Source: Leucoraja erinacea (lineage: Eukaryota). Taken from it: DNA of 57,745 nt. Position 1 is the first letter of the stretch. The number at the start of each line of letters is the position of its first letter. Below are positions 2,146-57,745 of this stretch, one piece after another. Made by a program: the position numbers and the translations under genes. The stretch covers positions 1-57,745 of the forward strand of contig NW_026575268.1 of the NCBI RefSeq assembly GCF_028641065.1, read 5' to 3'. Below the pieces are notes generated by a model that searched no databases, was not told the DNA's origin, and saw only the letters and a list, made by a program, of their open reading frames with translations.

Positions 2146-2540
2146 TGCTCTTACTGCCAGAGGTTGCGCTGCTTTTCTTGGGCCTGGATATTAGGCAGCA
2201 CCAAAGATCATAGCAGCACCCGCCTCGAGCAATGGTCACGTCTCCCAGCTGCTTGTGGAGCTCCTAGTCGTTGCGGACGGCCAGCTGCAGATGTCTGGGG
2301 ATGATGCGGGTCTTCTTGTTGTCCCGGGCCACGTTGCCGGCCAGCTCGACGGTTTCAGCCGTCAAATATTCGAGCAGAGCAGCCAGACAGACCGGGGCTC
2401 CGGCACCCACCCGCTCACCATAGTTGCCTTTTCTCTAGGAGCCTGTGAACACGGCCCACCGGGAATTGCAGTCCAGCTCGGGACGAGCGTGACTTAGGCT
2501 TGGTCTTGGCTTTGCCTCCGGTTTTCCCTCGTCCAGTCAA
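2146..2540 (-). pseudogene. H2A: Histone H2A pseudogene
   Basis: TTG in place of ATG, then [34 protein letters not shown]; frameshifts; transposon footprint carrying TGA; deletion near the C-terminus; 3' end approximate. Confidence 0.93.
2194..2219. mobile_element. Excision footprint of P-like DNA transposon in H2A pseudogene CDS
   Basis: GGCAGCAC-CAAAGATCAT-AGCAGCAC: 8-bp duplication (7/8) around a remnant of the TIR CAAAGATCTTATAG. Confidence 0.75.
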
Positions 2541-2568: not shown

Positions 2569-2606
2569 GTGGAAATGAAAGATTCTATAGGATCTTTGGT
2601 GGAAAT
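2569..2606. mobile_element. Excision footprint of P-like DNA transposon in H2A pseudogene 5' UTR/promoter
   Basis: GTGGAAAT-GAAAGATT-CTATAGGATCTTTG-GTGGAAAT: perfect 8-bp TSD around left and right TIR remnants. Confidence 0.85.
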
Positions 2607-6253: not shown

Positions 6254-6396
6254 ATCGGCAACTATGCACAAGCTCTCTCTGACACTCAGAACTGAGTGAG
6301 AAATGAAGCAAGTGGCGGCGGCACTGAGCAACTTAAAGGCAGCGAGCGGACGGGGCGGAGACATCCTGCTGTCAACTCCCGGCCCTTCCGCCTCCC

Positions 6397-6403
6397 TGTG
6401 TTT
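6397..6403 (-). promoter_or_regulatory. H1 AC box (AAACACA), unit A
   Basis: AAACACA followed by a GC box (GGAGGCGG) upstream of H1. Confidence 0.85.
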
Positions 6404-6750
6404 CTCTGTCTTCAAAAATCATGTAATTCCAATTAAAATCGGACAGTTCGGAGAGCTAAACTGGCCTCGGTACATCTCTGAGACCGGAATGCTTATTGTC
6501 GAGTAAGTCTGATACGAATTAAAGGCAGCGGTTTCCATTTAGCCCCGTTTCACTGATGCACTGAGCGCGTTATCTGTCAACATCACTGACATGCTCGCTG
6601 CGTTTCGACAGAAATATCCAAACCAACGTAAACTTTGCAGTTAATTCCCACTTCAGGACTGAGCTGGGAAGTGGGGCGATTACCTGCCACTGATATATTT
6701 ACACTTTTCACCAGTGGGGCTGGGAAATCCGTCCAAGTGTTCGGACCCAC

Positions 6751-6757
6751 AAACACA
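6751..6757 (-). promoter_or_regulatory. H1 upstream TG box (TGTGTTT), unit A
   Basis: 354 bp upstream of the AC box; conserved in unit B. Confidence 0.7.
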
Positions 6758-8300
6758 GTGACATCAGCCTGAGCCGCCCGCCCCTTTAAACGCCGCCGCT
6801 CATCCGAGTCTCTGATCCCTGGATTCGAATTCGTCTCGTCTCTTTCTTACATGAGCGACCCTGTATTTTTAAACAGTCCAACACCGGACACAAACTCCAG
6901 TTGTGGTTTCAACAACTCACTGTATGTCTGAAATGTAATGTATTTACTTTTTTATTTAACGGATAGTATTATGGTCACTGTCTCCCCACCGACTCTTCAG
7001 TCACTTGCTCTGCCTAATCTCCCAATAGGAGACCCAGGATCGCCTCTCTGTCAAGCCCTTCCACATATTGTTTGCAAAATCTTTCCTGGAATTCCACCCC
7101 TTCCATAGCCTCGAATCTATGGCAGTCCCAGTCCCAGAAGTTTAAATCACCTACCAGTATAACCCTGTTATACTTGCAGCTTTCTGCAACCCCCCTCCCC
7201 TACATCAGGTAACCCGTTAAGTTCACTAATTCACTAATTCTTTCTGCGTCTGCTTGCGAATTGTTGCAAATCAGGCAGCAGGGCCCTAAGATCTCTGTGA
7301 ACCTCGGGCCTTTGTCATCTCAGTATTTGGAGTTGGTTTATTATTGTCACCTAGCAATATGCTGTGAGTCGTTTTATTTTGTATATAATGCAGGCACATC
7401 GTACAGTCACAAAATACATGAGTACAAAAAGGAAACAAAGTGCAAGGGGCCACAACGAGGTGGATTGGAAGATTGGATTCATATGAAAGGTCTGTTCAAT
7501 TGTCTGATAACAGCGAGCGAATAGCTAATCTTGAATCTGGTGGTATGTGCTTTCAAACTGTCATATGATCGCCTGACAGCAGAGGAGAGGAGATAGAATG
7601 ACCAAGTTGTGAGTGGTTGTTGGATTATGTTGGTTGCTTTCCCGAGGCAGGGTGCAGTGTAGATTAAGTTGATGGAGCAGACTGGTTTGTGTTGGACTGG
7701 ACTGTTTCCACAACTCTCTGCATTCTATTGAGATCCTGGACAGACCTGCAATCTATGATGCTTCTGGATAAATGATTTCTATGGTGGTGCACCAGCAGAA
7801 ATTGCCAGTCATTGGAGAGCCCCTAGATTTATTTGGTATTCTTTGAAGTAGAGGCGTTGGTGTGGCGCTTATCGTAGAATCAATGTATTTGTACCAGAAC
7901 AAATAGTTGGTGATATGTTTGCAGAACATGCTTCTTTTCCCCCCCAAATTTGATAATTATGTATTCAGATGTACAGATTCATACATCCAATAAACAGAGC
8001 CTTTGGCCCACCACATCAATGCTGACCTTTTGACCCATCTATATTAATCCCATTTGCTTGCATTGGGACTTCATCTTCTGTGTCTTGCCTATATATCTGT
8101 ATGTCCAAATGTGTCTTACACATGATGACTGTATCCAATTCCACCACCTTCTCTGTCATATGATTCAGATATCAACCAATCCCTGTGTAACAAAAATACC
8201 CCTCCCATTCCCTTTAAATTTCCTTATGCTTCACATCAAACCAATCCCCTCATGTTTTTAAAATACTGACCATAAGAAAACAATATTGATTATTTACACT

Positions 8301-9351: not shown

Positions 9352-10632
9352 TTTAAGAGGGAACTGCAGATGCTGGAGAATCGAAGGTTACACAAAAAAG
9401 CTGGAGAAACTCAGCGGGTGCAGCAGCATCTATGGAGCGAAGGAGATAGGCAACGTTTCGGGCCGAAACCCTTCTTCAGACTGATCGGGGGCGGGGGCGG
9501 GGGTGGGTGGGGACAAGAAAGGGAAAAGGAGGAGTAGCCAGAAGGCTGGGGGATGGGAGGAGACAGCAGGGGGGCTAAGGAAGGGGAGGAGACAGCAAGG
9601 ACTAACAAAATTGAGAGAATTCGATGTTCATGCCCCCGGGGTGCAGACTCCCCAAACGGAATATGAGGTGCTGTTCCTCCAATTTCCGGTGCTGCTCGCT
9701 GTGGCCATGGAGGAGACCCAGGACAGAGAGGTCGGAGGCGGAGTGGGAGGGGGAGTTGAAGTGCTGAGCCACCGGGAGCTTGGTTATTGCGGAGCTTGGT
9801 TATTGCGGACCGAGCGGAGGTGTTCGGCGAAACGATCGCCCAACCTCCGCTTGGTGACATACAAAAAGTAATCCTCCGTCAGTTTCGCCACCTCCAACGT
9901 GACCCCACAACTCGCCACATCTTCCCATCTCCCCCCATATCTGCCTTCCGCAAAGACCGCTCCCTCCATAACTCCCTTGTCAATTCTTCCCTTCCCTCTC
10001 GGTCCACCCCCTCCCCGGGCACTTTCCCTTGCAACCGCAAGAGATGCAACACTTGTCCCTTTACCTCCCCCCTCGACTCCGTTCAAGGACCCAAGCAATC
10101 GTTCCAGGTGCGACAGAGGTTTACCTGCATCTCTTCCAACCTCATCTATTGCGTCCGCTGCTCTAGATGTCAGCAGATCTATATCGGTGAGACCAAGCGG
10201 AGGTTGGGCGATCGTTTCGCCGAACACCTCCGCTCGGTCCGCAATAACCAAGCTGACCTCCCGGTGGCTCAGCACTTCAACTCCCCCTCCCACTCCGCCT
10301 CCGACCTCTCTGTCCTGGGTCTCCTCCATGGCCACAGCGAGCAGCACCGGAAATTGGAGGAACAGCACCTCATATTCCGTTTGGGGAGTCTGCACCCCGG
10401 GGGCATGAACATCGAATTCTCCCAATTTTGTTAGTCCTTGCTGTCTCCTCCCCTTCCTTAGCCCCCCTGCTGTCTCCTCCCATCCCCCAGCCTTCTGGCT
10501 ACTCCTCCTTTCCCCTTTCTTGTCCCCTCCCACCCCCGCCCCCGATCAGTCTGAAGAAGGGTTTCGGCCCGAAACGTTGCCTATCTCCTTCGCTCCATAG
10601 ATGCTGCTGCACCCGCTGAGTTTCTCCAGCAT
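9352..10632 (+). mobile_element. 5'-truncated Penelope-like element with inverted terminal repeat
   Basis: GIY-YIG endonuclease (NLIYCVRCSRCQQIYIGETKR...EQHLIFRL..GMN) ending at 10434; about 9404-9856 is an inverted copy of about 10188-10630. Confidence 0.92.
10551..10578 (+). ncRNA. Minimal hammerhead ribozyme motif in Penelope pLTR (inverted copy at about 9453-9480)
   Basis: CTGAAGA core, stem II GGG/CCC, GAAAC-GTT with palindromic ACGT stem III, as known for Penelope-like elements. Confidence 0.7.
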
Positions 10633-17806: not shown

Positions 17807-18220
<414 letters not shown>

Positions 18221-19257: not shown

Positions 19258-19680
19258 TTATTTGGAACTGGTGTACTTGGTCACCGCCTTTGTCCCTTCC
19301 GACACGGCGTGCTTGGCCAGCTCCCCGGGAAGAAGCAGGCGCACGGCGGTCTGAATCTCTCGGGAGCTGATGGTCGCCCGCTTGTTATAATGCGCCAGGC
19401 GGGAAGCCTCGCCCGCGATACGCTCGAAAATATCGTTGACGAACGAGTTCATGATGCCCATGGCCTTGGAGGAGATGCCGGTATCCGGGTGAACCTGCTT
19501 CATCACTTTGTAGATGTAGATGGAGTAACTCTCCTTCCTCGACCTCCTGCGCTTCTTGCCCCCTTTGCCTGCGGATTTAGGCAAAGCTTTCTTTGCGCCC
19601 TTCTTGGCGGCTGTTTCCTTCTTGGCCGATGTTTTCGGCAAAGATCCTACAGCATCTTTGGTTTTCGGCGGATCAGGCAT
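19258..19680 (-). CDS. H2B: Histone H2B with extended N-terminal tail (140 aa)
   Basis: ATG at 19680: [31 protein letters not shown]...[12 protein letters not shown]...KYTSSK; intact histone fold. Confidence 0.97.
19631..19668. mobile_element. In-frame excision footprint of P-like DNA transposon inside the H2B CDS
   Basis: GTTTTCGG-CAAAGATCCTACAGC-ATCTTTG-GTTTTCGG: perfect 8-bp TSD, 15-nt left TIR remnant (13/15), 7-nt right remnant; net +30 bp. Confidence 0.9.
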
Positions 19681-19884: not shown

Positions 19885-19977
19885 GAAGCCGCTTCCACTG
19901 CCCCGTTCGCGTCACACCAAGCTCCAGTATCTTTGGCGTGACACTACATTTACATGGATAGGAAAGGTTATAGGGAT

Positions 19978-25199: not shown

Positions 25200-25312
25200 G
25201 GGCGTAGAGGTAGATCGCTTGCAGCACCGGAGACCTGGGTTCGATCACGACTACGGGAGCTGTCTGTCGGAGTTTGTACCTTCTCCCCGTGGCCGTGTGG
25301 GATTTTTTCCGA
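25200..25312 (+). mobile_element. V-SINE (HE1-like) head fragment
   Basis: GAGACCTGGGTTCGATC B box and GGAGTTTGTACCTTCTCCCCGTG. Confidence 0.75.
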
Positions 25313-25730
25313 AAACTTTCCGAGAGAACTGAAAACGTTCAGCAGGTCAGGCAGCATTTTCTGGAGTTGTGAAGCGCAGAAACCGGTTCTTCGGCCCAAC
25401 GTCCATACTGAGCAAGGGCCTTTGTGAGGGTGTCACATTTGCCAACCTTTGGCCCTTAATTCTACTTGCCTCTATCGTCTCATCTGTCAGCTTGTCTCAT
25501 ACACCCACATCCCTTTCTGTTGAAAAATCTTGCCCCTCACGTGTCCCTTAACTCTGTCCCCTCTCACCTTAAACCTTTGCCTAATACTTTTAGATTCTGA
25601 AACCCTCGGACAAAGACTGTGTATCCACATTCCCTCCGACCCTCATGATTTGCTGTAACTTTGAGGTCAGCCCTTCAGTCTGCATAGTTTCTGGGGCAGC
25701 AGTCCTTGTGAAAGATTAAACAGTGTTAAT

Positions 25731-26820
25731 CAAAGATCTTATAGCGAAGCAAGATAGGCTACTCCTGCTAAATGCAATGGTTCTGTGACGTGTAGTACGC
25801 GTTGGAAATCAGGGGCCATTTTCCCACGAACTGTCTTAATCAGACCTCTGTCATGTCCTCACAATTCAGACCCGACTGCTTCTGTTTTCAAAAATGCAAT
25901 TGCAGAGCAGTTTGTGTGGGTCAGATTCAAATAGGAACTGTCAGTTCAAACTTCTTGTCAATCCCCACAATTTGATTCTACATAATTGCCATTTGACTGT
26001 AATGACGGAGAGGGGAAATCATTTCTGTTTTCACTGCAGGCTCACAAGCAGTGTTTGAGTTGATAATGCCAGGCTAGCAATGGAAGAGCTCGCAGGGTGA
26101 TTGACAGGGGGGGACTTTTTGTGCGTGAAAGCCTTGGATTCATAATTCTGTCGGTTCATAATTCTGTTTTCGGATTAAAGAATGGAAGATTTTAAACGTA
26201 GATAGGTGAAAATTATATAAATGAATAAAAGTCACACAAGCTGCCTCTTCTAATCCAATAATGAACTTTATTTCAGACTAGACAAGGGACATTGCATAAA
26301 TGTTAGTAATAAGGAGGGATTGTAAATAACTCTCTCTGGTGGTGGTGGAGTAGGGGTGAAGGGGGAAACTTTAATTCTTAGTCCCCTACCTGGTCGGCGA
26401 CTCCCAAACTCGCGGAGCTGGGGGCTCCGTCCGTCCCCCGCGGGCTCGCGCCGGTCTGGAGCTCGGACCCCGCCCGGCAACTCTACTCTCTGGCTGCGCG
26501 CTCCAAATCCAGCGACGCTCCGCGAATGTTGGAGTCGTCGGCCACCCGCAGGTAAGGCTCCGGAGCTTGCCGCACGGCGACCCGGTAAGGCATTGCACTC
26601 TCTCTCCCCGCTGCCCCCCAGCGCTGCGACGCCGCTGACCGCCGGACATTCGCGGAGCTGGAGCGTCCGGCTCCCCGCTGCGGGCCCGCGCTGGGATTTG
26701 GAGCGCCTCGCGGAGCAAGGGGTAGAGTTGCCGGGGTCGGAGCTACAACCGGAATCCGCCCATGAGCGTACCTCACGTTTGCGTGAGAGTAACCCATCTT
26801 GCTTCGCTATAAGATCTTTG
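25731..26820. mobile_element. Non-autonomous P-element-like TIR transposon (MITE copy 1)
   Basis: 34-bp TIRs CAAAGATCTTATAGCGAAGCAAGAT(A/G)GG(C/T)TACTC; 8-bp TSD GTGTTAAT at 25723-25730 and 26821-26828; superfamily assignment is inference. Confidence 0.92.
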
Positions 26821-27139
26821 GTGTTAATGATTCAGGCCAGAGATCCTTCATCAGATAACATTCTGTTTGGTTTCCAGATTGGTTATGTACCTGGCGAATG
26901 AGCCGTTGAAAATCAGGCACCAGGAACCCAAGAACTGTCTGAATCTCAGATCTCTGTCATGTCTCACAATTCAGACAACATGCTTCCGTTTTCCAAAAAT
27001 GGACAATTGCAGAGCGATAGAGTGCTACAGCCCAGAAATAGGAACTTCAGCCCTCTCTGTCCATCCCCACATCTTTGCCCATCTACATAAATCCCATCTG
27101 ACTGTGCCCTGGACGGAGAGGGGAATTCACATCGACTGT

Positions 27140-29605
27140 TATCACTGCAGTCTACGTTCCCCCGGACGCTAATGCCAGGCTAGCAATGGAAGAGCTGCAA
27201 GCTGCTATCAGCAAACATCTATCTGCTCACCCAGAGGGGGCATTTATTGTTGTGGGTGATTTCAACCACTCCGACCTTAAAACTGTACTCCCCAGGTTCC
27301 ATCAGCATGTTTCCTGCCCAACCAGAGGAAACAATGTTCTGGACTTAGTTTACACTAATATTACTGAAGCCTACAAAGCCCTCCCCCTCCCCCACCTTGG
27401 ACAGTCTGACCACCTCTCCCTGTTCCTGCTCCCCAAATACACACCTCTGATCAGACGTGTGAAACCTACCATGAGGACAGTGAAGGTTTGGCCTGAGGGG
27501 GCTGTCTCTGACTTACAGGAGCAGTTTCAGCAGACAGACTGGAGTCTCTTTGCTACTCAGTCCACCTTCAATTCACAAGTGGACATCAACTCGTACACCT
27601 CAACAGTTCTGGACTATATAAAATTCTGTACCGATAATGTCACTACCCACAAGGAGATAAAGACCTTCCCTAACCAGAAGCCGTGGATGAGCAGGGAGGT
27701 CAGACTCCTACTGAAGGCTCGCGATGCCGCTTTCAGATCTGGCGACGCTGAGGGATACAGCTCATCCAGGGCCAATCTGAAAATGGGAATTAGGATTGCT
27801 AAACTCAATCATAAACGGCGGATTGAGGAGCATTTCCACAACAACTCTGACCCCAGGCGCATGTGGCAAGGAATCAAATCCCTTGCCGATTACCAGAAAG
27901 TTAACACCCCTCCCCCAGACAACGCCACCCTGCCTGACGAGCTAAACCACTTCTATGCTCGCTTTGACCGGGACAACAAAACCCCAGCCATTAAAGTTGC
28001 TCCACCCCCGAATGAACAACCTCTCAGCCTCTCCACCTCTGCTGTACAAGATGCACTGAGCAAGGTGAATGAGCGCAAAGCTGCCGGCCCCGATGGCATC
28101 CCTGGCCGGGTGCTCAGGGCATGTGCTGGACAACTATCCCCAGTCCTCGCCGACATTTTCAATCTCTCACTGGCCCAGGGTGTTGTCCCCACTTGCCTCA
28201 AGACATCAACCATCGTGCCAGTGCCCAAACAGTCAGCTACAGGGAGTCTCAACGATTTCCGCCCAGTGGCACTCACCCCTGTCATTGCAAAGTGCTTTGA
28301 GCGGCTGATCTTGGCTCACCTCAAAGCCTGCCTCCCCCCCCCACTGGACCCCCACCAGTTTGCCTACCGGACCAACAGGTCTACAGAGGACGCCATATCG
28401 GCGGCCCTACACTCTGCCCTGACCCACCTGGACTACAACAACTCCTACATCAGGCTGCTGTTCATTGACTTCAGCTCTGCCTTTAACACCGTCATCCCCG
28501 CCAGCTTGATCACCAAACTCAGTGGACTTGGCATCTCCACCTCCCTCTGCAACTGGACACTGGACTTCCTCACTAACAGACCACAGTCTGTTAGGGTCAA
28601 TAACCTCACCTCCTCCACTATAACACTGAACACCGGAGTGCCACAGGGCTGTGTGCTCAGCCCTCTCCTCTCCTCCCTCTTCACCCACGACTGCATCCCA
28701 AAGTACGGATCCAACGCCATTATTAAGTTTGCTGACGATACCACGGTAGTAGGACTGATCAGCGACAACGATGAGTCAGCCTACAGGGAGGAGATCCAGC
28801 ACCTGACAGCCTGGTGTGCCAACAATAACCTCGTCCTCAACTCCAAGAAGACGAAGGAGATTATTGTTGACTTCAGGCAGACCAGAGGAGGCAGTCATAC
28901 CCCCATCCATATAAACGGGACTGAGGTGGAGCGCGTCTCCAGCTATAAATTCCTCGGAGTACATATCTCGGAGGATTTGTCCTGGTCCCTCAACACCTCC
29001 AAGCTGATCAAAAAGGCACAGCAGCGCCTTTACTTCCTGAGGAGGCTCAAGAAAGCCCACCTGTCCCCCCGGATCCTGACCAACTTTTACCGCTGTACCA
29101 TAGAGAGTATCCTGACCACCTGCTTCACGGTATGGTACAGCAGCTGCACTGCTGCGGACAGGAAGGCACTACAACGGGTGGTGAAAACCGCGCAGCACAT
29201 CATCGGTGCCCCGCTCCCTGCCATGGATGCCCTCCACCGAAAACGGTGTCTGAGACGGGCTGGGAAGATCATCAAAGACCCCTCACACCCCAACCATGGA
29301 CTGTTTGCCCTCCTCCCATCAGGGAGGCGGTACAGGAGCCTCAGATCACGTACTAGTAGGATGAGGAACAGCTTCTACAACAATACAATCACATTGCTGA
29401 ACTCGGAGTCCCGCCGATAGATTTCTCTGGTCCCTCCGTCCCCATTGTTTAATTATTCTGTATTTCTTGATTATTCTGTATCTTCTCTCTTTCTATTTTT
29501 TATTTTTTTTCCTTTATGTACAACTACTACGGACTGACGCAAAACTGCATTTTGTTGTACTCATACTTGTATTTGTGCGATGACATTAAAGTAGAATTGA
29601 ATTTA
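27140..29605 (+). mobile_element. Rex1/Babar LINE, 5'-truncated
   Basis: Begins in EN (TAVYVPPDANA); 3' tail GCATTTTGTT..TGACATTAAAG-(GAATT)n. Confidence 0.93.
27186..29420 (+). CDS. Rex1/Babar polyprotein, partial EN plus complete RT, uninterrupted 744 aa
   Basis: GDFNH, GQSDH, KAAGPDG, FIDFSSAFNT, GVPQGCVLSP, KFADD, LPSGRRYR. Confidence 0.9.
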   Translation: MEELQAAISKHLSAHPEGAFIVVGDFNHSDLKTVLPRFHQHVSCPTRGNNVLDLVYTNITEAYKALPLPHLGQSDHLSLFLLPKYTPLIRRVKPTMRTVKVWPEGAVSDLQEQFQQTDWSLFATQSTFNSQVDINSYTSTVLDYIKFCTDNVTTHKEIKTFPNQKPWMSREVRLLLKARDAAFRSGDAEGYSSSRANLKMGIRIAKLNHKRRIEEHFHNNSDPRRMWQGIKSLADYQKVNTPPPDNATLPDELNHFYARFDRDNKTPAIKVAPPPNEQPLSLSTSAVQDALSKVNERKAAGPDGIPGRVLRACAGQLSPVLADIFNLSLAQGVVPTCLKTSTIVPVPKQSATGSLNDFRPVALTPVIAKCFERLILAHLKACLPPPLDPHQFAYRTNRSTEDAISAALHSALTHLDYNNSYIRLLFIDFSSAFNTVIPASLITKLSGLGISTSLCNWTLDFLTNRPQSVRVNNLTSSTITLNTGVPQGCVLSPLLSSLFTHDCIPKYGSNAIIKFADDTTVVGLISDNDESAYREEIQHLTAWCANNNLVLNSKKTKEIIVDFRQTRGGSHTPIHINGTEVERVSSYKFLGVHISEDLSWSLNTSKLIKKAQQRLYFLRRLKKAHLSPRILTNFYRCTIESILTTCFTVWYSSCTAADRKALQRVVKTAQHIIGAPLPAMDALHRKRCLRRAGKIIKDPSHPNHGLFALLPSGRRYRSLRSRTSRMRNSFYNNTITLLNSESRR

Positions 29606-38450: not shown

Positions 38451-38546
38451 GGAACGATAGCACATTATAACGCGCAGCCGTCCCATTCCGACCAAAGATT
38501 ATAGAGCAGAGCTCCGCTGCCTTTGTCCCTCCAACCGGCCTCATCA

Positions 38547-43707: not shown

Positions 43708-43850
43708 GTCGGTGACTCAGCACAAACTCTCTCTGACACTCAGGACTGAGTGAGAAATGAAGCGAGAGGCGGCGGCACAGCGCAACTTAAAGGCAGCGAG
43801 CGGACGGGGCGGAGACATCCTGCTCTCAGATCACGGCCCCTGCGCCTCGC

Positions 43851-44210
43851 TGTGTTTCTCTGTCCTCAAAAACTCTCCGATTCCAATTAAAATCAGATAG
43901 CTCGGAGACCTAAATTACCTCGGTACATCTCTGAGACCGGAATGTTTATTGTCCAGTAGATTTGATAGGAATTAAAGGCAGCGCTTTCCATTTCGCCCGG
44001 TTTCACTGCTGCACTGAGGGCGTTCTCTGCCCCGATCGCTGACATGCTCGCTGCTTATCGTCAGAAATATCGAAACCAACGTAAACTATCCGGTTAATTC
44101 CAACTTCAGGACTGAGCTGGGAAGTGGGGCGATCGCGTGCCACTGATAGCTTTACATTTTTTACCAGTGGGGCTGGGAAATCCGGCAAAGTGTTCGGACC
44201 CACAAACACA
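43851..44210 (-). promoter_or_regulatory. H1 AC box (43851-43857) and upstream TG box (44204-44210), unit B
   Basis: AAACACA and TGTGTTT on the coding strand, 353 bp apart. Confidence 0.75.
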
Positions 44211-44667
44211 TTGACATCAGTCTGAGCCGCCCGCCCCTTCAACACACTCTCTGACACAATGTTCACATCTACACATTCACAGCTCAGACAGGTGGCCCGT
44301 TGCACAGTTCCCAGGGTGGAATTACCTCGACGATCGACCCGTGCTGTGGATTCTCGGGGGTTACGTGTAGTTTCCCAGCTCAGTAACTGTTAAACTCGCT
44401 GACTCCGCCGCTCCTCAGAGTCTCTGATCCCTGGAATCGGATTCGTCTCTTTCATACATGAGCGACCCTCTATTTTAAACAGTTCAACACCCGACACAGA
44501 CTCCAGTTGTGGTATCAATTCACTGTATGTCTGAAATATAATTTATTTACATGTTTTTTATTAAAACTGATATAATTATGGTCACTGGCTCCCCACTGAC
44601 ACTTCAGTCACTTGGTCTGCCTGATTTACCAATAGGAGGCCCAGTGTCGCCTCCTCTCTGTCAGGCC

Positions 44668-45602
44668 CAAAGATCTTATAGCGGAGCAAGATAGGCTACT
44701 GCTGCTAAATGCAATGGACTGACGTGTAGTACGCTATGGAGGGGATCATGGGCATTTTTCCACGCCCATTTTAGCAACCTGAGCCTACCTAACCCGACCC
44801 GACTCGCACTGTAATCAATGTTGCGGGGCAACAGTTTGTGTGGGTCAGATTCATAAATCTGTCAGTTCAAACTTCTTGTCAAGAATAAAATTTGATTCTG
44901 GTCATTGTCTTTTTTAATGTTTTTTAAATCATTTCTTTTTAAATGGCTCACAAGCAGTGTTTGAGTTGATTTTGTAGTAACCGGAACCGACCCGACTCGC
45001 AGGGTGATTGACAGGGGGGGACTTTTTGTGCGTGATTATAGGGTTAGATTCATGATTCAATTAGTTCATAATTCTGTTGATTCTTGTTAAGGAATAAAAT
45101 GTTTATAAACACACATACATGAAAATTATATAAATGTATATAACACACACAATTATATTTCTTCTAAACCAATAATGAACTTTATTTCAGACTAGACAAG
45201 GGACATTAAATAAGAAACATTGTAAATAAGAAACATTGTCTTGGGGCACTCTCTCTCCCCGCTGCCCCGGGCCCCGCACACTCTCTCCCCGCTGCCCCGG
45301 GCCCCGCACTCCTTCTCCCCTGCTGCCCCGCACTCTCTCTCCCCGCACTCCTTCTCCCCGCTGCCCCGGGCCCCGCACTCTCTCTCCCCGCTGCCCCGGG
45401 CCTTGCACTCCTTCTCCCCGCTGCGGATCCAATCTTTGGCCGGAAGCAAGAAGGCGGGAGCAAGAAAGCGGAGCAAAATGGCGGAACAAGATGGCGGAGT
45501 CAGCTTGCTAAAATGTGTCCTGTAATCACCCATGAAACCGCCCATGAGCGTACCTCACGTTTGCGTGAGAGTAACCTATCTTGCTTCGCTCTAAGATCTT
45601 TG
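44668..45602. mobile_element. Non-autonomous P-element-like TIR transposon (MITE copy 2)
   Basis: ~33-bp TIRs; 8-bp TSD GTCAGGCC at 44660-44667 and 45603-45610; empty paralogous site CTCTGTCAAGCCCTTCCACA at 7046-7065. Confidence 0.93.
45246..45423. repeat. ~30-bp GC-rich tandem repeat inside MITE copy 2
   Basis: GCACTCTCTCTCCCCGCTGCCCCGGGCCCC units; single unit in MITE copy 1 at about 26595. Confidence 0.9.
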
Positions 45603-46303
45603 GTCAGGCCCTTCCACATACACTGTATTACTTGAGAAATGGTTCCTGGAGGTATTTAACAAATTCCACCCCGTCCACATAGCCTCGAATCTATGGCAGA
45701 CCCAGTCAGTGTAATGGAAGTTGAAATCACCTACCTGTTATACATACAGCCTTCTGCAACCTCACTCCCTTACATCAGGTAACCTGTTAAGTTCACTAAT
45801 TCTGTCTGCGTCTGCATGCGAGAATCATGCACCAGAACCCCAAGATCTGTGTGAACCTCAGGCCTTTGTCATCTCTTGGTTTTTGGAGTAGATTTATTAT
45901 TGTCAAATGTAGCAATGTACAGTGACAAAGTTTATTTTGCATGTAATGCTGGGAGATCGTTCACTCATACAGTACATTAGTGCAAAAATAAAATTAAGTG
46001 CAAGGGGCCACACCGAGGTGAATTGGAAGATTGGAAACATATGAAAGGTGTCAACAGTCTGATAACAGCGGGCAAATAGCTGTTCTTGAATCTGTTGTTA
46101 CGTGATTTGAAACTGTCATATTTTCTACCTGACAGCAGAAGAGAGGAAATAGAATGACCAGGTTGTGAGTGGTTTTTGGATTATGTTGGGTGCTTTCCTG
46201 AGGTAGCATGAGCTGTAGAGCTGTAGATTAAGTTGATGGAGCAGGCTGGTTTGTGTTGGACTGGACCGTTTCAACAACTCTTTGCATTTTTTGCGATGCC
46301 GGA

Positions 46304-53000: not shown

Positions 53001-54436
53001 AGTGCTTCCCTTTTCTACTTCCTGCCTCCCATTCTGTCTACTAGCTTTCGCTATTTGAGTCCCTCGCCCCAACCATTCTAGTTTAAAGTCTCCCCAGTAG
53101 CCTTTGCAAATTTCCCCGCCAGGATATTGGTCCCCCTCGGGTTCAAGTGCAACCCATCCTTTCTGTACAGGTCCCACCTTCCCCAAAAGAAGTCCCAATG
53201 ATCCAGAAACTTGAATCCCTGCCCTCTGCACCAGTCTTTCAGCCACGCATTTATCCTCCACCTCGCTCCATTCCTACTCTCACTGTCGCGTGGCACAGGC
53301 AGTAATCCTGAGATTGTTACCTTTTTGGTCCTTTTCCTTAACTCTCCTCCCAACTCCCTAAATCCTCCCTTCAGGACCTCTTCCCTTTTTTTACCTATGT
53401 CATTGGTACCTATATGTACCACGACCTCAGGCTCCTCTCCCTCTGATTTAAGGATATCTTGGATGCGTTGAGACACGTCCGAGACCTTGGCACCAGGGAG
53501 GCAGACCACCATCCTGGTCTCCCGACTGCGTCCACAGAATCGCCTATCCGACCCCCTAACAATAGAGTCCCCAATTACTATTGCCCTCTTTTTTTCCCTA
53601 CCTTTTGGAGCAACAGGGCCGGTCTCTGTGCTGGAGGCCCGTCCGCTGTCACTACCCCCGGGTAGGCTGTCACCCCCATCCGTACTCAAACAGGAGTACT
53701 TATTTGTGAGGTGTACCGACATTGGAGTACTCACTCGTTCCTGCCTCTGCCCCTTGCCCTTCCTTAGCGTGACCCACATGTCTCTCTCCCGTGGTTTTGG
53801 AGTGACCACCTCCCTATAACTCCCCTCTATGACCTCCTCGCTCTCCCTGATCAGACAGAGGTCATCGAGCTGCTGCTCCAGGATCCTAATACGGTCCCTT
53901 AGGAGCCCCATCTTGCTGCACCTGGTGCAGATGTGGACGTCTGGAGGGCCATCCGACACCATGACCTCCCACATCTGACATCCAGAACAGTACACTGCTC
54001 TGACTGTCATTCTCCCGCCTTACCCTGGATCCGATACAAGTACAATACAATAGAAACTGCTGGGAGAAATCAGCAGGTATCTGACTCACAACAGCGTCTC
54101 CCTCGTGACCTTTAAACTGCACCTTTGTTATATAAACAAAAAGCACTGTACCTTTAGCCCACTGTACCTTTACTAAAGCAGTGCACCTTTAACCAGAAAG
54201 CACAAATGCTAACCTGAGGTTGCACCCAATCAGCTGCTTCTAGTCTGCTTCCACCAATCAGCGGCTTCCACCAGAACCCTCCCTATGGAGTGTGGAACTT
54301 TACGGATTTTGGTAAAAGTCCTGACAATCCTCCACACTCTCCAACGGTCCCGGGCCTCTGTGAAAACAAGCCCTGCGCCCGATTTAAGTACTCACCGCCC
54401 TGACCCTCCTCCACACTCTCCAACGGTCCCGGGCCT
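50057..54436 (-). mobile_element. Full-length CR1 LINE (5' UTR, ORF1, frameshifted ORF2, 3' tail)
   Basis: ORF2 pieces 52695-52898, 51941-52777, 51401-51907, 50132-51310 (KYADD); 29-bp direct repeat in the 5' UTR (54330 and 54409). Confidence 0.93.
53078..54010 (-). CDS. CR1 ORF1p: zinc finger, leucine zipper, SGNH/GDSL esterase
   Basis: CSGC...CTRC; heptad leucines; IVIGDSIVRG; HIGTND; DGLHLN. Confidence 0.92.
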   Translation of the reverse strand: MTVRAVYCSGCQMWEVMVSDGPPDVHICTRCSKMGLLRDRIRILEQQLDDLCLIRESEEVIEGSYREVVTPKPRERDMWVTLRKGKGQRQERVSTPMSVHLTNKYSCLSTDGGDSLPGGSDSGRASSTETGPVAPKGREKKRAIVIGDSIVRGSDRRFCGRSRETRMVVCLPGAKVSDVSQRIQDILKSEGEEPEVVVHIGTNDIGKKREEVLKGGFRELGGELRKRTKKVTISGLLPVPRDSESRNGARWRINAWLKDWCRGQGFKFLDHWDFFWGRWDLYRKDGLHLNPRGTNILAGKFAKATGETLN

Positions 54437-57400
54437 CATGACAAACAACAGTGGACCCAACACAGATCCCTGTGGCACCCCACTAGTCACCGGTCTCCAA
54501 CCTGACAAACAGCCATCCACCATTACTCTCTGGCGTCTCCCATTCAGCCACTGTTGAATCCATCTTGCTACTCCTGCATTTATACCGAAAAATTGAACCT
54601 TCTTAACCAACCTTCCTTGAGGAACCTTGTCAAAGGCCTCATTAAAGTCCATATAGACAACATCCACTGCTTTACCCTCATCAATTTCCATAGTAACCTC
54701 TTCAAAAAATTCAAGAAGATTAGTCAATCATGAACTTCCAGGCTCAAATCCATGTTGACTGTTCCTAATCAGACCCTGTTTATCCAGATGCTTATATATA
54801 TTATCTCTAAGTATCTTTTCGATTAATTTGCCCACCACTGAAGTCAAACTAACAGGTCTATAATTGCTAGGTTTACTCTTAGAACCCTTTTTAAACAATG
54901 GAACAACATGCGCAGTACGCCAATCCTCCGGCACTATACCCGTTTCTAATGACATTTGAAATATTTCTGTCAAAGCCTCTGCTATTTCTACACTAACTTC
55001 CCTCAATGTCCTAGGGAATATCCTGTCAGGACCTGGAGACTTATCCACTTTTATATTTTTCAAAAGTGTCAGTACTTCTTTTTCTTTGAATCTCATAATA
55101 TCCATAGCTACTCTACTTGTTTCCCTTACCTCACATAATTCAATATCCTTCTCCTTGGTGAATACCGAAGAGAATAAATTGTTCAATATCTCCCCCATCT
55201 CTTTTGGCTCTGCAGATAGCTGTCCACTCTGTCTCTCTAATGGACCAATTGTATCCCCTCGTTATCCTTTTGCTATTAATATAGCTGTAGAAACCCTTTG
55301 GATTTACTTTCACATTACTTGCCAAAGCAACCTCATATCTTCCTTTAGCTTTTCTAATTTCTTTCTTAATTCTTTTTACATTCTTTATACTGCTCAAGCA
55401 CCTCATTCACTCCATGCTGCCTATAATTATTGTAGATCTCTCTTTTTCCGAATCAAGTGTCCAATTTCACTTGAAAACCAGGGCTCTTTCCAATTTTTAC
55501 TATTTCCTTTCAACCGAACAGGGACATAAAGATTCTGTACTCTTAAAATTTCCCCTTTAAATGTCCTCCATTTCCCTTCTACATCCTTCCCATAAAACAA
55601 AATGTCCCAATTCACTCCTTTTAAATCATTTCGCATCTCATCAAAGTTAGCCTTTCTCCAATCAAAAATCTCAACCCTAGGTCCAGTTCTGACCCTCTCC
55701 ATAATTATATTGAATCTAATGGTATTGTGATCACTGGACCAGAAGTGCTCCCCAAGGCATACCTCCGCCACCTGACCCGTCTCATTTCCTAACAGGAGGT
55801 CCAGCACTGCCCCTTCTCTATTAGCTACCTCTATGTATTGCTGCAAAAAAACTATCCTGCACACATTTTACAAACTCCAAACCATCCAGCCTATTTACAG
55901 AATGTGTTTCCCAGTCTATGTGTGGAAAATTGAAATCTCCCACAATCACTACCTTGTGCTTACTACTAATATCTGCTATCTCCTTACATATTTGCTCTTC
56001 CAATTCTCGTTCCCCATTTATCGGTCTATAATACACCCCTACAAGTGTTGCTACACCCCCCCACTTCTCAGTTCCACCCAAATAGCCTCTCTAGACAAGG
56101 CCTCCAATCTATCCTGCCAAAGCACTGCTGTAATATCTTCCCTGACAAGCAAGGCAACACCTCCACCTCTTGCCCCTCCAATTCTCACACCTGAAGCAAC
56201 GAAATCCTGGAATATTTAGTTTCCAATCACAGCCCTCCTGCAACCATGTTTCACTGATCGCCACAATATCATACTTCCAGGTGTCAATCCAGGCTCTAAG
56301 CTCATCCACCTTTCTTACAATGCTCCTAGCATTAAAATATGCACATTTAAGAAACCCACCGCCTCTTATTCTCTGTTTATTTTATTTTTCTTCTTTCTCC
56401 CCTAGATTTTGGGTCCAAGTGCTTCCCTTCTCTGCCCCCTGCTTCACACACTGTCTGCTAGCTTTCTCAATTTGAGTCCCTCCCCCCAACTATTCTAGTT
56501 TAAAGTCTACCCAGTAGCCTTTGCAAATCTCCCGGCCAGGATATTGGTCCCCCTTGGGTTCAAGTGCAACCCGTCCTTTCTGTACAGGTCACACCTTCCC
56601 CAAAATAAGTCCCAATGATCCAGAAACTTGAATCCATACCCACTGCACCAGTCCTTCAGCCACGCATTTATCCTCCACCTCGCTCCATTCCTACTCTCAC
56701 TGTCGCGTGGCACAGGCAGTAATCCTGAGATTGTTACCTTTTTGGTCCTTTTCCTTAACTCTCCTCCCAACTCCCTAAATTCTCCCTTCAGGACCTTTTC
56801 TCTTTTTTTACCTATGTCATTGGTACCTATATGCACCACAACCTCAGGCTCCTCTCCCTCTGATTTCAGGATATCTTGGACGTGTTGAGACACATCCGAG
56901 ACCCTGGCACCAGGGAGGCTGGCTACCATCTGGGTCTCCTGACTGCGTCCACAGAATCGCCTATCCGACCCCCTAACTATAGAGTCCCCAATTACTATTA
57001 CCGTCCTCTTTTTTTCCCTACCTTTCTGAGCAACAGGGCCGGTCTCTGTGCCGGAGGCCCGGCCGCTGTCGCTACCCCCGGGCAGGCTGTCCCCCTCAAC
57101 CATACTCAAACAGGAGTACTTATTTTCAAGGTGTACAGACACTGGAGTACTCACTCGTCCCTGCCTCTGCCCCTTGCCCTTCCTAAGCGTGACCCACATG
57201 TCTGTCTCCCATGGTTTTGGAGTGACCACCTCCCTATAACTCCTCTCTATGACCTCCTCACTCTCCCTGACCAGACAGAGGTCATCGAGCTGCTGCTCCA
57301 GGATCCTAATATGGTCCCTTAGGAGCCCCATCTCGATGCACCTGGCGCAGATGTGGACATCTGGAAGGCTATCCGACTCCATGACCTCCCACATCTGACA

Positions 57401-57445
57401 TCCAGAACAGTAAACTGCCCTGGCCCTCATTCTTAAGTAAAGGCA
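54437..57445 (-). mobile_element. Second CR1 copy (3'-truncated in RT) directly abutting the first
   Basis: Collinear with 51020-54010; ORF2 broken. Confidence 0.92.
56507..57430 (-). CDS. CR1 ORF1p (second copy)
   Basis: MRARAVYCSGC...VIGDSIVRG...DGLHLN. Confidence 0.88.
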   Translation of the reverse strand: MRARAVYCSGCQMWEVMESDSLPDVHICARCIEMGLLRDHIRILEQQLDDLCLVRESEEVIERSYREVVTPKPWETDMWVTLRKGKGQRQGRVSTPVSVHLENKYSCLSMVEGDSLPGGSDSGRASGTETGPVAQKGREKKRTVIVIGDSIVRGSDRRFCGRSQETQMVASLPGARVSDVSQHVQDILKSEGEEPEVVVHIGTNDIGKKREKVLKGEFRELGGELRKRTKKVTISGLLPVPRDSESRNGARWRINAWLKDWCSGYGFKFLDHWDLFWGRCDLYRKDGLHLNPRGTNILAGRFAKATG

Positions 57446-57745
57446 CCACATTAGTCTTCCAGTACCTCAGCCTTGCCTAACAGTGATACAAATATCTCTG
57501 CAGATCCTCTGGATTTTCTTCCCTGGATTCACACAATGTTCAAAGATACCCTTGATCAGATCCCAGGGATTTACTCTTCTTTATGCAGTATAAGACCACC
57601 AGTGCCTCTTTCCAGATTGAACGTAGAACAGTACGGCTCCTTCAGCCCACAATGTTTGTGCCAAACATGATGCTGATTACACTGATTTCATCTGCCTGTA
57701 CATGATCCACACTTCTCTATTCCCTGCACATCCATGTGCCTATCT

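Follow-up and report, generated by a model that had tools for sequence, protein, structure and literature searches.

A 57,745-nt stretch of DNA from Leucoraja erinacea (contig NW_026575268.1, positions 1 to 57,745; taken as a whole, the window) carries histone genes, among them an H2B gene (19258-19680, minus strand), an intact H2A gene (17807-18187), an H2A pseudogene (2200-2540, minus strand) and two copies of an H1 gene. It also carries two DNA elements that end in the same inverted repeat (element 1, 25731-26820; element 2, 44668-45602) and, in or near the histone genes, several short inserts that are made up of letters of that repeat. The present analysis concerns the transposon family to which these sequences belong and the way in which its members appear to have been cut out of their insertion sites.

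Two full copies with a common end

Throughout the window, the terminal 15-mer of the repeat occurs six times with two mismatches or fewer, against an expectation of 0.10; none of 100 shuffled sequences reached six occurrences. Matches are exact at 25731 (plus strand), 26806-26820 (minus) and 44668 (plus), deviate by one letter at 45588-45602 (minus) and by two letters at 2584-2598 (minus) and 19639-19653 (plus). The exact 8-mer CAAAGATC is present seven times over both strands, where simple arithmetic predicts about 1.8 copies, and all seven fall inside five sites: the two elements and three of the short inserts. A first-pass annotation of this DNA had proposed that these five sites share a terminal inverted repeat. 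With counts so far above shuffles and expectation, the proposal is borne out.

Element 1 (plus strand) is 1090 bp long. Its 34-nt inverted ends (25731-25764 and 26787-26820) are 94% complementary, and it is bounded by two copies of the target sequence GTGTTAAT (25723-25730 on the left, 26821-26828 on the right; 8 of 8 letters matching). Element 2 (plus strand) is 935 bp long, with 34-nt inverted ends that are 91% complementary and a perfect 8-bp duplication of GTCAGGCC (44660-44667 and 45603-45610). The two elements are 74% alike across the left 570 nt and 96% alike across the last 69 nt, while their middle parts consist of differing GC-rich fillers. No convincing reading frame was found in either element. 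Inner inverted repeats of 16 and 13 nt, approximately 80-100 nt from the ends, are found in element 2 only. Element 2 further contains an inner-end motif in four or five tandem copies (45441-45492). Altogether, these data support the view that the two copies and the remnants described below form one cut-and-paste DNA transposon family, characterized by 34-nt inverted ends, about 70 conserved nucleotides at each end and 8-bp target duplications.

Several further features of the fillers deserve mention. The filler of element 1 contains a high-copy GC-rich repeat (26557-26752), which has its own consensus flanks in all four sequencing runs considered below, and an inverted partial copy of this repeat lies at 26391-26544. 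In element 2, a GC-rich tandem array of approximately 30-nt units (45246-45424) is followed by the inner-end motif copies, ahead of which lies a stray 7-nt end fragment (45432); judging from the repeat pairs D2 and D3, approximately 195 nt may have been duplicated internally. Elsewhere in the window, a segment at 38493-38525 starts like the element end minus two letters and finishes with CCTTTG, with no flanking direct repeat; it may be a chance match or a decayed fragment.

Whether element 1 is a fixed component of its locus was judged from the contigs of four public runs, aligned to positions 25200-27185. In each run, a joint from 25722 to 26821 omits 1098 letters, with 8 letters fitting either side; it equals an empty site with one GTGTTAAT. 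A 597-nt contig in X1 (record 3) crosses this empty site with one differing letter on each side. The corresponding contig in X5 (795 nt) differs at 8 and 5 letters, and the empty state therefore occurs on a more diverged flank as well. X16 has flank contigs that are identical to the window and end exactly at 25730 or begin exactly at 26821, together with an empty joint whose depth (41.4) is lower than the depths of the flanks (64.6 and 72.8); these values fit, but do not prove, a heterozygote for element 1. Element 1 is thus polymorphic for its presence or, failing that, a very young insertion. Other sequenced individuals lack it and have a precise empty site in its place; hence, the family moved recently. 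The annotation had invoked a mobile transposase of the P/THAP9 type in this lineage: the empty site in all four runs upholds the recent mobility, and no transposase is tied to the ends.

The same contigs give an impression of the abundance of the ends. Summed contig depth at the termini (25736-25802 and 26741-26807) is near 1e5, compared to about 90 in the X1 flank, a figure that is not a copy number. Likewise, the summed depth of the outer 70 nt of both ends and of 26071-26338 lies three orders of magnitude above that of single-copy flank, again without being a copy number. Separately, the left flank of element 1 contains very high-depth repeats at 25200-25333 and 25535-25601 in all four runs. 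These properties bear on the earlier description of the two elements as MITEs (miniature inverted-repeat transposable elements). Both elements are real and have exact 8-bp duplications, and to that extent the description stands. In its strict sense (short, homogeneous, high-copy) the label may suit them less well: they are 1090 and 935 bp long and 74% alike across the left 570 nt, and high summed depth is confined to the termini and 26071-26338. Their make-up is rather suggestive of mixed deletion derivatives that carry filler.

Scars in and beside histone genes

Three inserts were recognized from the outset as remnants of the family. One lies in the coding region of the H2B gene (19631-19668) and consists of a 22-bp end stub (19639-19660) between two perfect copies of GTTTTCGG, which start at 19631 and 19661. 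Another is located approximately 40-60 nt upstream of the start of the H2A pseudogene (2569-2606), where a second 22-bp stub (2577-2598) separates perfect copies of GTGGAAAT at 2569 and 2599. The third falls within the coding region of the H2A pseudogene, at its 3' end (2194-2219); here, 10 nt (2202-2211) stand between GGCAGCAC at 2194 and AGCAGCAC at 2212, a duplication with 7 of 8 letters matching. In addition, an insert of 19 nt (19917-19935) lies between GCGTCACA and GCGTGACA approximately 240 nt upstream of the H2B start (19909-19943). It resembles the 22-bp stub, scoring 10 in a looser scan with a threshold of 8, in which 29 of 30 shuffles gave no match and one shuffle gave a single match. 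Judging from its letters, this insert is probably a fourth, older remnant.

The two 22-mers stand out without any knowledge of the family. A scan for inserts of 9-46 bp with 7-nt inverted arms between exact 8-bp repeats returned exactly these two sequences from the whole window, whereas 19 of 20 shuffles returned none and the remaining one returned a single hit. Both stubs are composed exclusively of end letters, with a make-up of 15+7 and 7+15, respectively. They have 19 of 22 letters in common and both carry a C at position 9 of the end, the position at which the four full ends carry a T. The remnant lengths that had been put forward hold for the 15+7 stub and for the stub of about 10 nt; the second 22-mer had been read as 8+14. 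All stubs in the window retain 15 nt or less per side. All five duplications first claimed begin with GT, as had been asserted (five of six when the probable fourth remnant is counted), and three of the five begin with GTG.

Paralogous sequences within the window provide unoccupied counterparts for several sites. H1 is present twice, together with its upstream region (6346-7740 and 43800-46303). The two upstream regions are 79-87% alike, and the element is confined to the second; the first has a single copy of the target, GTCAAGCC at 7050-7057, and no element. When the intact H2A gene is aligned to the pseudogene, the additional 18 nt of the latter at 2202-2219 have no counterpart, and a single GGCAACAC is found at 17859. 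The additional 30 nt at 2577-2606 are missing from the intact gene as well, with GAGAAAAT present once, at 18214. Since the paralogues carry each target once and without insert, we consider these to be true insertions accompanied by target duplication.

The H2B scar occupies codons 5-14 and is in frame, adding 30 nt, or 10 residues, to the N-terminal tail; translation from the ATG at 19680 shows a frame that is still open despite the scar. The H2A copy at 2200-2540 is a pseudogene, with two scars and a 1-nt frameshift relative to the intact gene. Element 2 sits 961 nt upstream of the H1 start. Element 1, sitting in the 5' part of a long interspersed nuclear element (LINE) and not at a histone gene, is the exception to a rule that was correctly noted from the start, namely, that four of the five sites (two at the H2A pseudogene, one in H2B and one upstream of H1) are in or upstream of histone genes. 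The three remnants are all within 100 nt of a histone coding region, territory that makes up 9.0% of the window; with the fourth remnant included, all four lie within 250 nt, territory that makes up 13.1%. Such placement would arise by chance approximately once in 1000 trials, or more rarely, if the events were independent, which is doubtful because the remnants are paired at two genes. The pattern suggests insertion near open, gene-proximal DNA (histone gene ends and the 5' part of a LINE). Gene proximity is also preferred by several hAT elements. A preference of this sort would fit P elements, which make 8-bp duplications and favor promoters, origins and nearby sites (PMC7776569; here and below, published work is cited from those portions of each source that were available to us).

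Proposed staggered cutting and pairing of tails

In the case of P transposase, the cut in the second strand lies 17 nt inward of the element end, and each donor flank is left with a 17-nt 3' tail of end sequence (PMC7776569). At Drosophila P junctions, Chan and colleagues recorded, between the two duplications, up to 17 nt of tail on either side of a filler that is often templated by the ends; most wild-type products result from partial repair synthesis followed by end joining and retain more (PMC2895639). The remnants in the window share this anatomy, reading duplication, end stub, end stub, duplication. A different outcome is expected from hAT, Transib and Mutator-like elements, in which the flank attacks its own other strand and forms a hairpin, and the whole end leaves with the element (PMC5499845). 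Reported hAT footprints consist of a few flank-derived letters or deletions (PMC3499496), and excision of Tol2 in zebrafish is either precise or accompanied by small insertions or deletions (PMC3553969). Hairpin-type excision leaves no end letters in the footprint. Here, three or four inserts flanked by duplications are made of end letters, in agreement with the initial argument that retention of terminal repeat letters runs contrary to hAT excision. Secondary repair synthesis could blur this test of hAT.

The recurrence of the 22-bp length can be examined by letting two identical 3' tails of the element end pair with each other and predicting the length of the product. When position 9 is a C, positions 9-14 read CTATAG, a 6-nt palindrome that exceeds in length any other self-complementary stretch among the first 17 letters. 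Pairing at 9-14, trimming of the flaps and fill-in yield a 22-bp product, and keeping the mismatched letter 15 makes it exactly 15+7. The predicted sequence differs from the stub at 19639 in one of 22 letters and from the stub at 2577 in two of 22. With the T found at position 9 of present-day ends, the longest palindrome is 8 nt long (positions 3-10) and a 12-bp product is predicted; pairing of the present-day end at letters 15-16 gives a 30-bp product, that is, 15+15. A 15+15 joint (25745 to 26806), equal to the 30-bp prediction, is present in X16. The same joint occurs in X19 with 13 filler letters, and a 20+15 joint with 15 filler letters occurs in X1, both fillers containing end-derived runs. 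Overall, in six of the 15 contig joints listed, the outermost 13-21 nt of the left end are linked to the outermost 15-20 nt of the right end; what stands between the two is resolved for two of these six.

These results can be accommodated in a simple scheme. The transposase would cut one strand at the tip of the element and the other approximately 15-17 nt inside the end, and each donor flank would be left with a single-stranded 3' tail made of the outer end letters, as happens with the Drosophila P transposase. The two identical tails might then pair at a short internal palindrome, after which flaps would be trimmed, gaps filled and the break sealed. The product would be a stub of end letters only, placed between two copies of the 8-bp target. 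An older variant of the end has C at position 9, and pairing at CTATAG would here give the 22-bp stub, which is seen twice. Such pairings need tails that are single-stranded to position 15-16 or beyond, and this would point to the P geometry. The family thus probably cuts like P, leaving long 3' tails at the donor site, and from the long 3' stagger we infer an enzyme of the P/THAP9 kind.

Repair synthesis may also have shaped the interior of element 1. Between approximately 25803 and 26090, element 1 is a sharp, collinear mosaic of blocks resembling element 2 and blocks resembling a LINE. The former are identical to element 2 (44740-45010) in 199 of 205 alignment columns. The latter match, in 143 of 154 columns (approximately 93%), the endonuclease-coding stretch of the LINE on the right of element 1 (26904-27196, plus strand; 84-376 nt from the element), with an exact 26-nt string present at 26065 in the element and at 27171 in the LINE. 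Element 2 itself shows no likeness to 26904-27196. The LINE-like blocks are much closer to the adjoining LINE copy than that copy is to the other LINE copies in the window (78% alike). No close copy of 25803-25869 or 26004-26070 was found in the four runs, a hole that in itself proves nothing. One idea is that error-prone repair synthesis with template switching took place at the element 1 locus. An older copy of the family starting at 25709 was also considered and discarded, its right flank being the endonuclease part of the LINE.

The window contains several LINE copies. Reading frames at 53078-54010 and 56507-57451 (minus strand) resemble the esterase-type first reading frames of LINEs, and a frame at 9787-10434 (plus strand) resembles the GIY-YIG endonuclease of a Penelope-like retroelement.

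Superfamily assignment and known systems

Taking all of the evidence together, the best explanation is in our opinion that the window holds copies and excision scars of one non-autonomous cut-and-paste family with P-like, long-stagger excision, to which we assign a probability of approximately 0.55. We likewise lean, by a little, towards membership in the P superfamily. Elements of this superfamily make duplications of 7-9 bp (typically 8), and the duplications here match at 8 of 8 letters at four sites and 7 of 8 at one. P elements are further recognized by terminal and inner inverted repeats, both of which are represented (34-nt ends, 94% and 91% complementary; inner repeats in element 2). 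Terminal inverted repeats of insect P elements measure 27-32 nt (PMC3698922).

A number of observations weigh against this assignment. No transposase, be it of the P/THAP9 type (THAP domain plus RNase H fold with a GTP-binding insertion) or of the hAT type (BED and hAT-dimerisation domains), could be linked to the ends: a Pfam search with 8 stop-free pieces of both elements gave one sub-threshold match, to the P-transposase domain PF21789, on the piece of element 1 at 25758-25931 (plus strand; E value 0.34; 11.4 bits against a cut-off of 24). We rejected this lead because it is below the cut-off, involves one piece out of eight and falls mostly in LINE-derived blocks. The ends start with CAAAG, which fits the consensus YARNG, and this terminal motif together with 8-bp duplications has been used to recognize hAT families (PMC3014272). 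The zebrafish P-like element has 13-nt ends unlike those described here, and, in the sources available, its ends and those of fly P begin with CAT, not with CAA. An inner-end motif is repeated near one end of element 2. Repeats of this kind recall the subterminal binding sites of hAT elements. The variant with C at position 9, on which the explanation of the 22-bp stubs relies, is absent from the list of present-day copies (no row at 25739 in the contig comparison). Only three or four scars are available in the window, in two pairs each within the same gene. Moreover, identical stubs might in principle be left by any cut-and-paste element if repair synthesis from a sister copy were followed by end joining. 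Finally, contig joints from elsewhere in the genome retain 19, 20 or 22 nt of one end. The annotation had put a 17-nt ceiling on the remnants; the ceiling is respected by the window stubs and exceeded in these contigs. Some of the longer joints may represent 17 nt plus filler that matches by chance. As repair synthesis followed by end joining gives lengths above 17 nt with P as well, the ceiling is not a clean test.

The target sequences proved to be of no help. The GT at the start of the duplications had been regarded as a pointer to P. The motif cores published for P, Hermes and hobo read GTCCGGAC, GTGNNCAC and GTTTAAAC, respectively (PMC2577343), and those of the two latter elements, which belong to hAT, begin with GT too. 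The marker was consequently abandoned. Other leads that were dropped include a hAT C-terminal look-alike, read by eye on the minus strand of both elements (25981-26073 in element 1), which had no Pfam match. A search of 25600-27000 against Rfam gave only a sub-threshold match to a small nucleolar RNA (16.1 bits against 39), and scans for the element ends in metagenome and prokaryote contigs gave no matches.

The main competitor to a P-like family, though in our judgement an unlikely one, is a hAT family that excises through flank hairpins and whose stubs are secondary, arising when a few end letters are copied from the sister chromatid during repair and the same palindromes serve to join the two nascent strands. 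The YARNG ends with 8-bp duplications, the GT-first targets of Hermes and hobo (with GTG in three duplications here), the repeated inner-end motif and the joints with more than 17 nt per side are all compatible with it, and hAT is the commonest superfamily with 8-bp duplications in vertebrates. What argues against it is the form of the stubs. None of those in the window exceeds 15 nt per side, whereas repair synthesis usually extends far past 15 nt and, when followed by end joining, produces incomplete copies rather than stubs (PMC2895639). Footprints reported from vertebrate and insect cells are devoid of end letters in the accounts available, and our literature search, limited to the accessible parts of the sources, turned up no account of such end stubs for hAT. 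That an enzyme with hAT-type ends should have evolved P-like staggered cleavage is decidedly improbable.

It is also improbable that the long staggered cut is made by the enzyme of another, possibly undescribed, superfamily with 8-bp duplications. To our knowledge, the cleavage chemistry of several superfamilies has yet to be worked out, and neither P end used for comparison (fly and zebrafish, as given in the sources available) matches the sequence of the ends here. Nothing in the data speaks positively for such an enzyme, and we know of no kind other than P with tails of this sort. Lastly, the 22-bp unit could be mobile in its own right, a miniature element of which copies reach new sites, each making an 8-bp duplication. 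The two copies do agree at 19 of 22 letters, in their 15+7 make-up and in having C at position 9. On the other hand, the unit lacks the approximately 70 nt conserved at the ends of full copies and would be too short for its two ends to be brought into contact; stubs of other lengths occur in contigs elsewhere, and pairing of the tails at their palindrome explains the recurrence without mobility. Given its size and the tail-palindrome model, we regard a mobile 22-mer as very improbable indeed.

If the P-like reading is correct, the scars are of interest in several respects. Direct evidence on P-type cutting comes from the fruit fly, and the cut positions of THAP9 and Pdre2 are not described in the portions of the literature examined. 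A natural archive of scars would allow the stagger, the preference for targets at gene starts and the dates of activity to be read from sequence alone. The polymorphic insertion suggests that a working enzyme may persist in the lineage, which would be rare among vertebrates and, if true, a possible tool. The scars furthermore illustrate how excision can lengthen conserved genes by short in-frame peptides, as in H2B, or contribute to their inactivation, as in the H2A pseudogene. We see an even chance that the full picture holds: a P-type family active now or very recently in a cartilaginous-fish-like vertebrate, with scars that record a stagger of at least 15 nt, have their length set by the tail palindrome and have become fixed in histone genes, including an in-frame insertion of 10 residues in an H2B that is intact in other respects. 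In the parts of the literature that were accessible, no account of P-type scars or of active P elements in cartilaginous fishes was found.

Comparison with known systems, again as far as the available sources describe them, reveals both likenesses and differences. Non-autonomous hAT elements (those of Anolis; Tol2, TcBuster and Hermes) resemble the present family in their 8-bp duplications and YARNG ends and, for Hermes and hobo, in targets that begin with GT; they differ in excising through flank hairpins, with footprints free of end letters. BuT5, a P-associated MITE of the Drosophila repleta group, is likewise non-coding, approximately 1 kb long and flanked by duplications of 8-9 bp, and shares only its termini with a P master element (PMC3698922). 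BuT5 has 3-nt ends and inner repeats of 16-17 nt, and its master element is known. The zebrafish system of Pdre2 and zfTHAP9 is a P-superfamily member from a vertebrate that makes 8-bp duplications, has inner inverted repeats and includes internally deleted copies. The ends of Pdre2 are 13 nt long and unlike those found here, and its excision products are described as deletions (PMC10983969), genomic end-stub scars going unmentioned in the portion of that source available. The Drosophila P element, as studied in the P{wa} assay, has CAT rather than CAA ends and no sequence likeness to the family in the window, whose host is a vertebrate and whose stagger is deduced from its scars. The two agree in having 8-bp duplications, inverted ends of similar length (approximately 31 nt in P) and an 8-bp target core that begins with GT, in what may be a common tendency to insert near promoters and at nearby sites, and in forming junctions in which the duplication encloses up to 17 nt of each end, often with filler templated by the ends.

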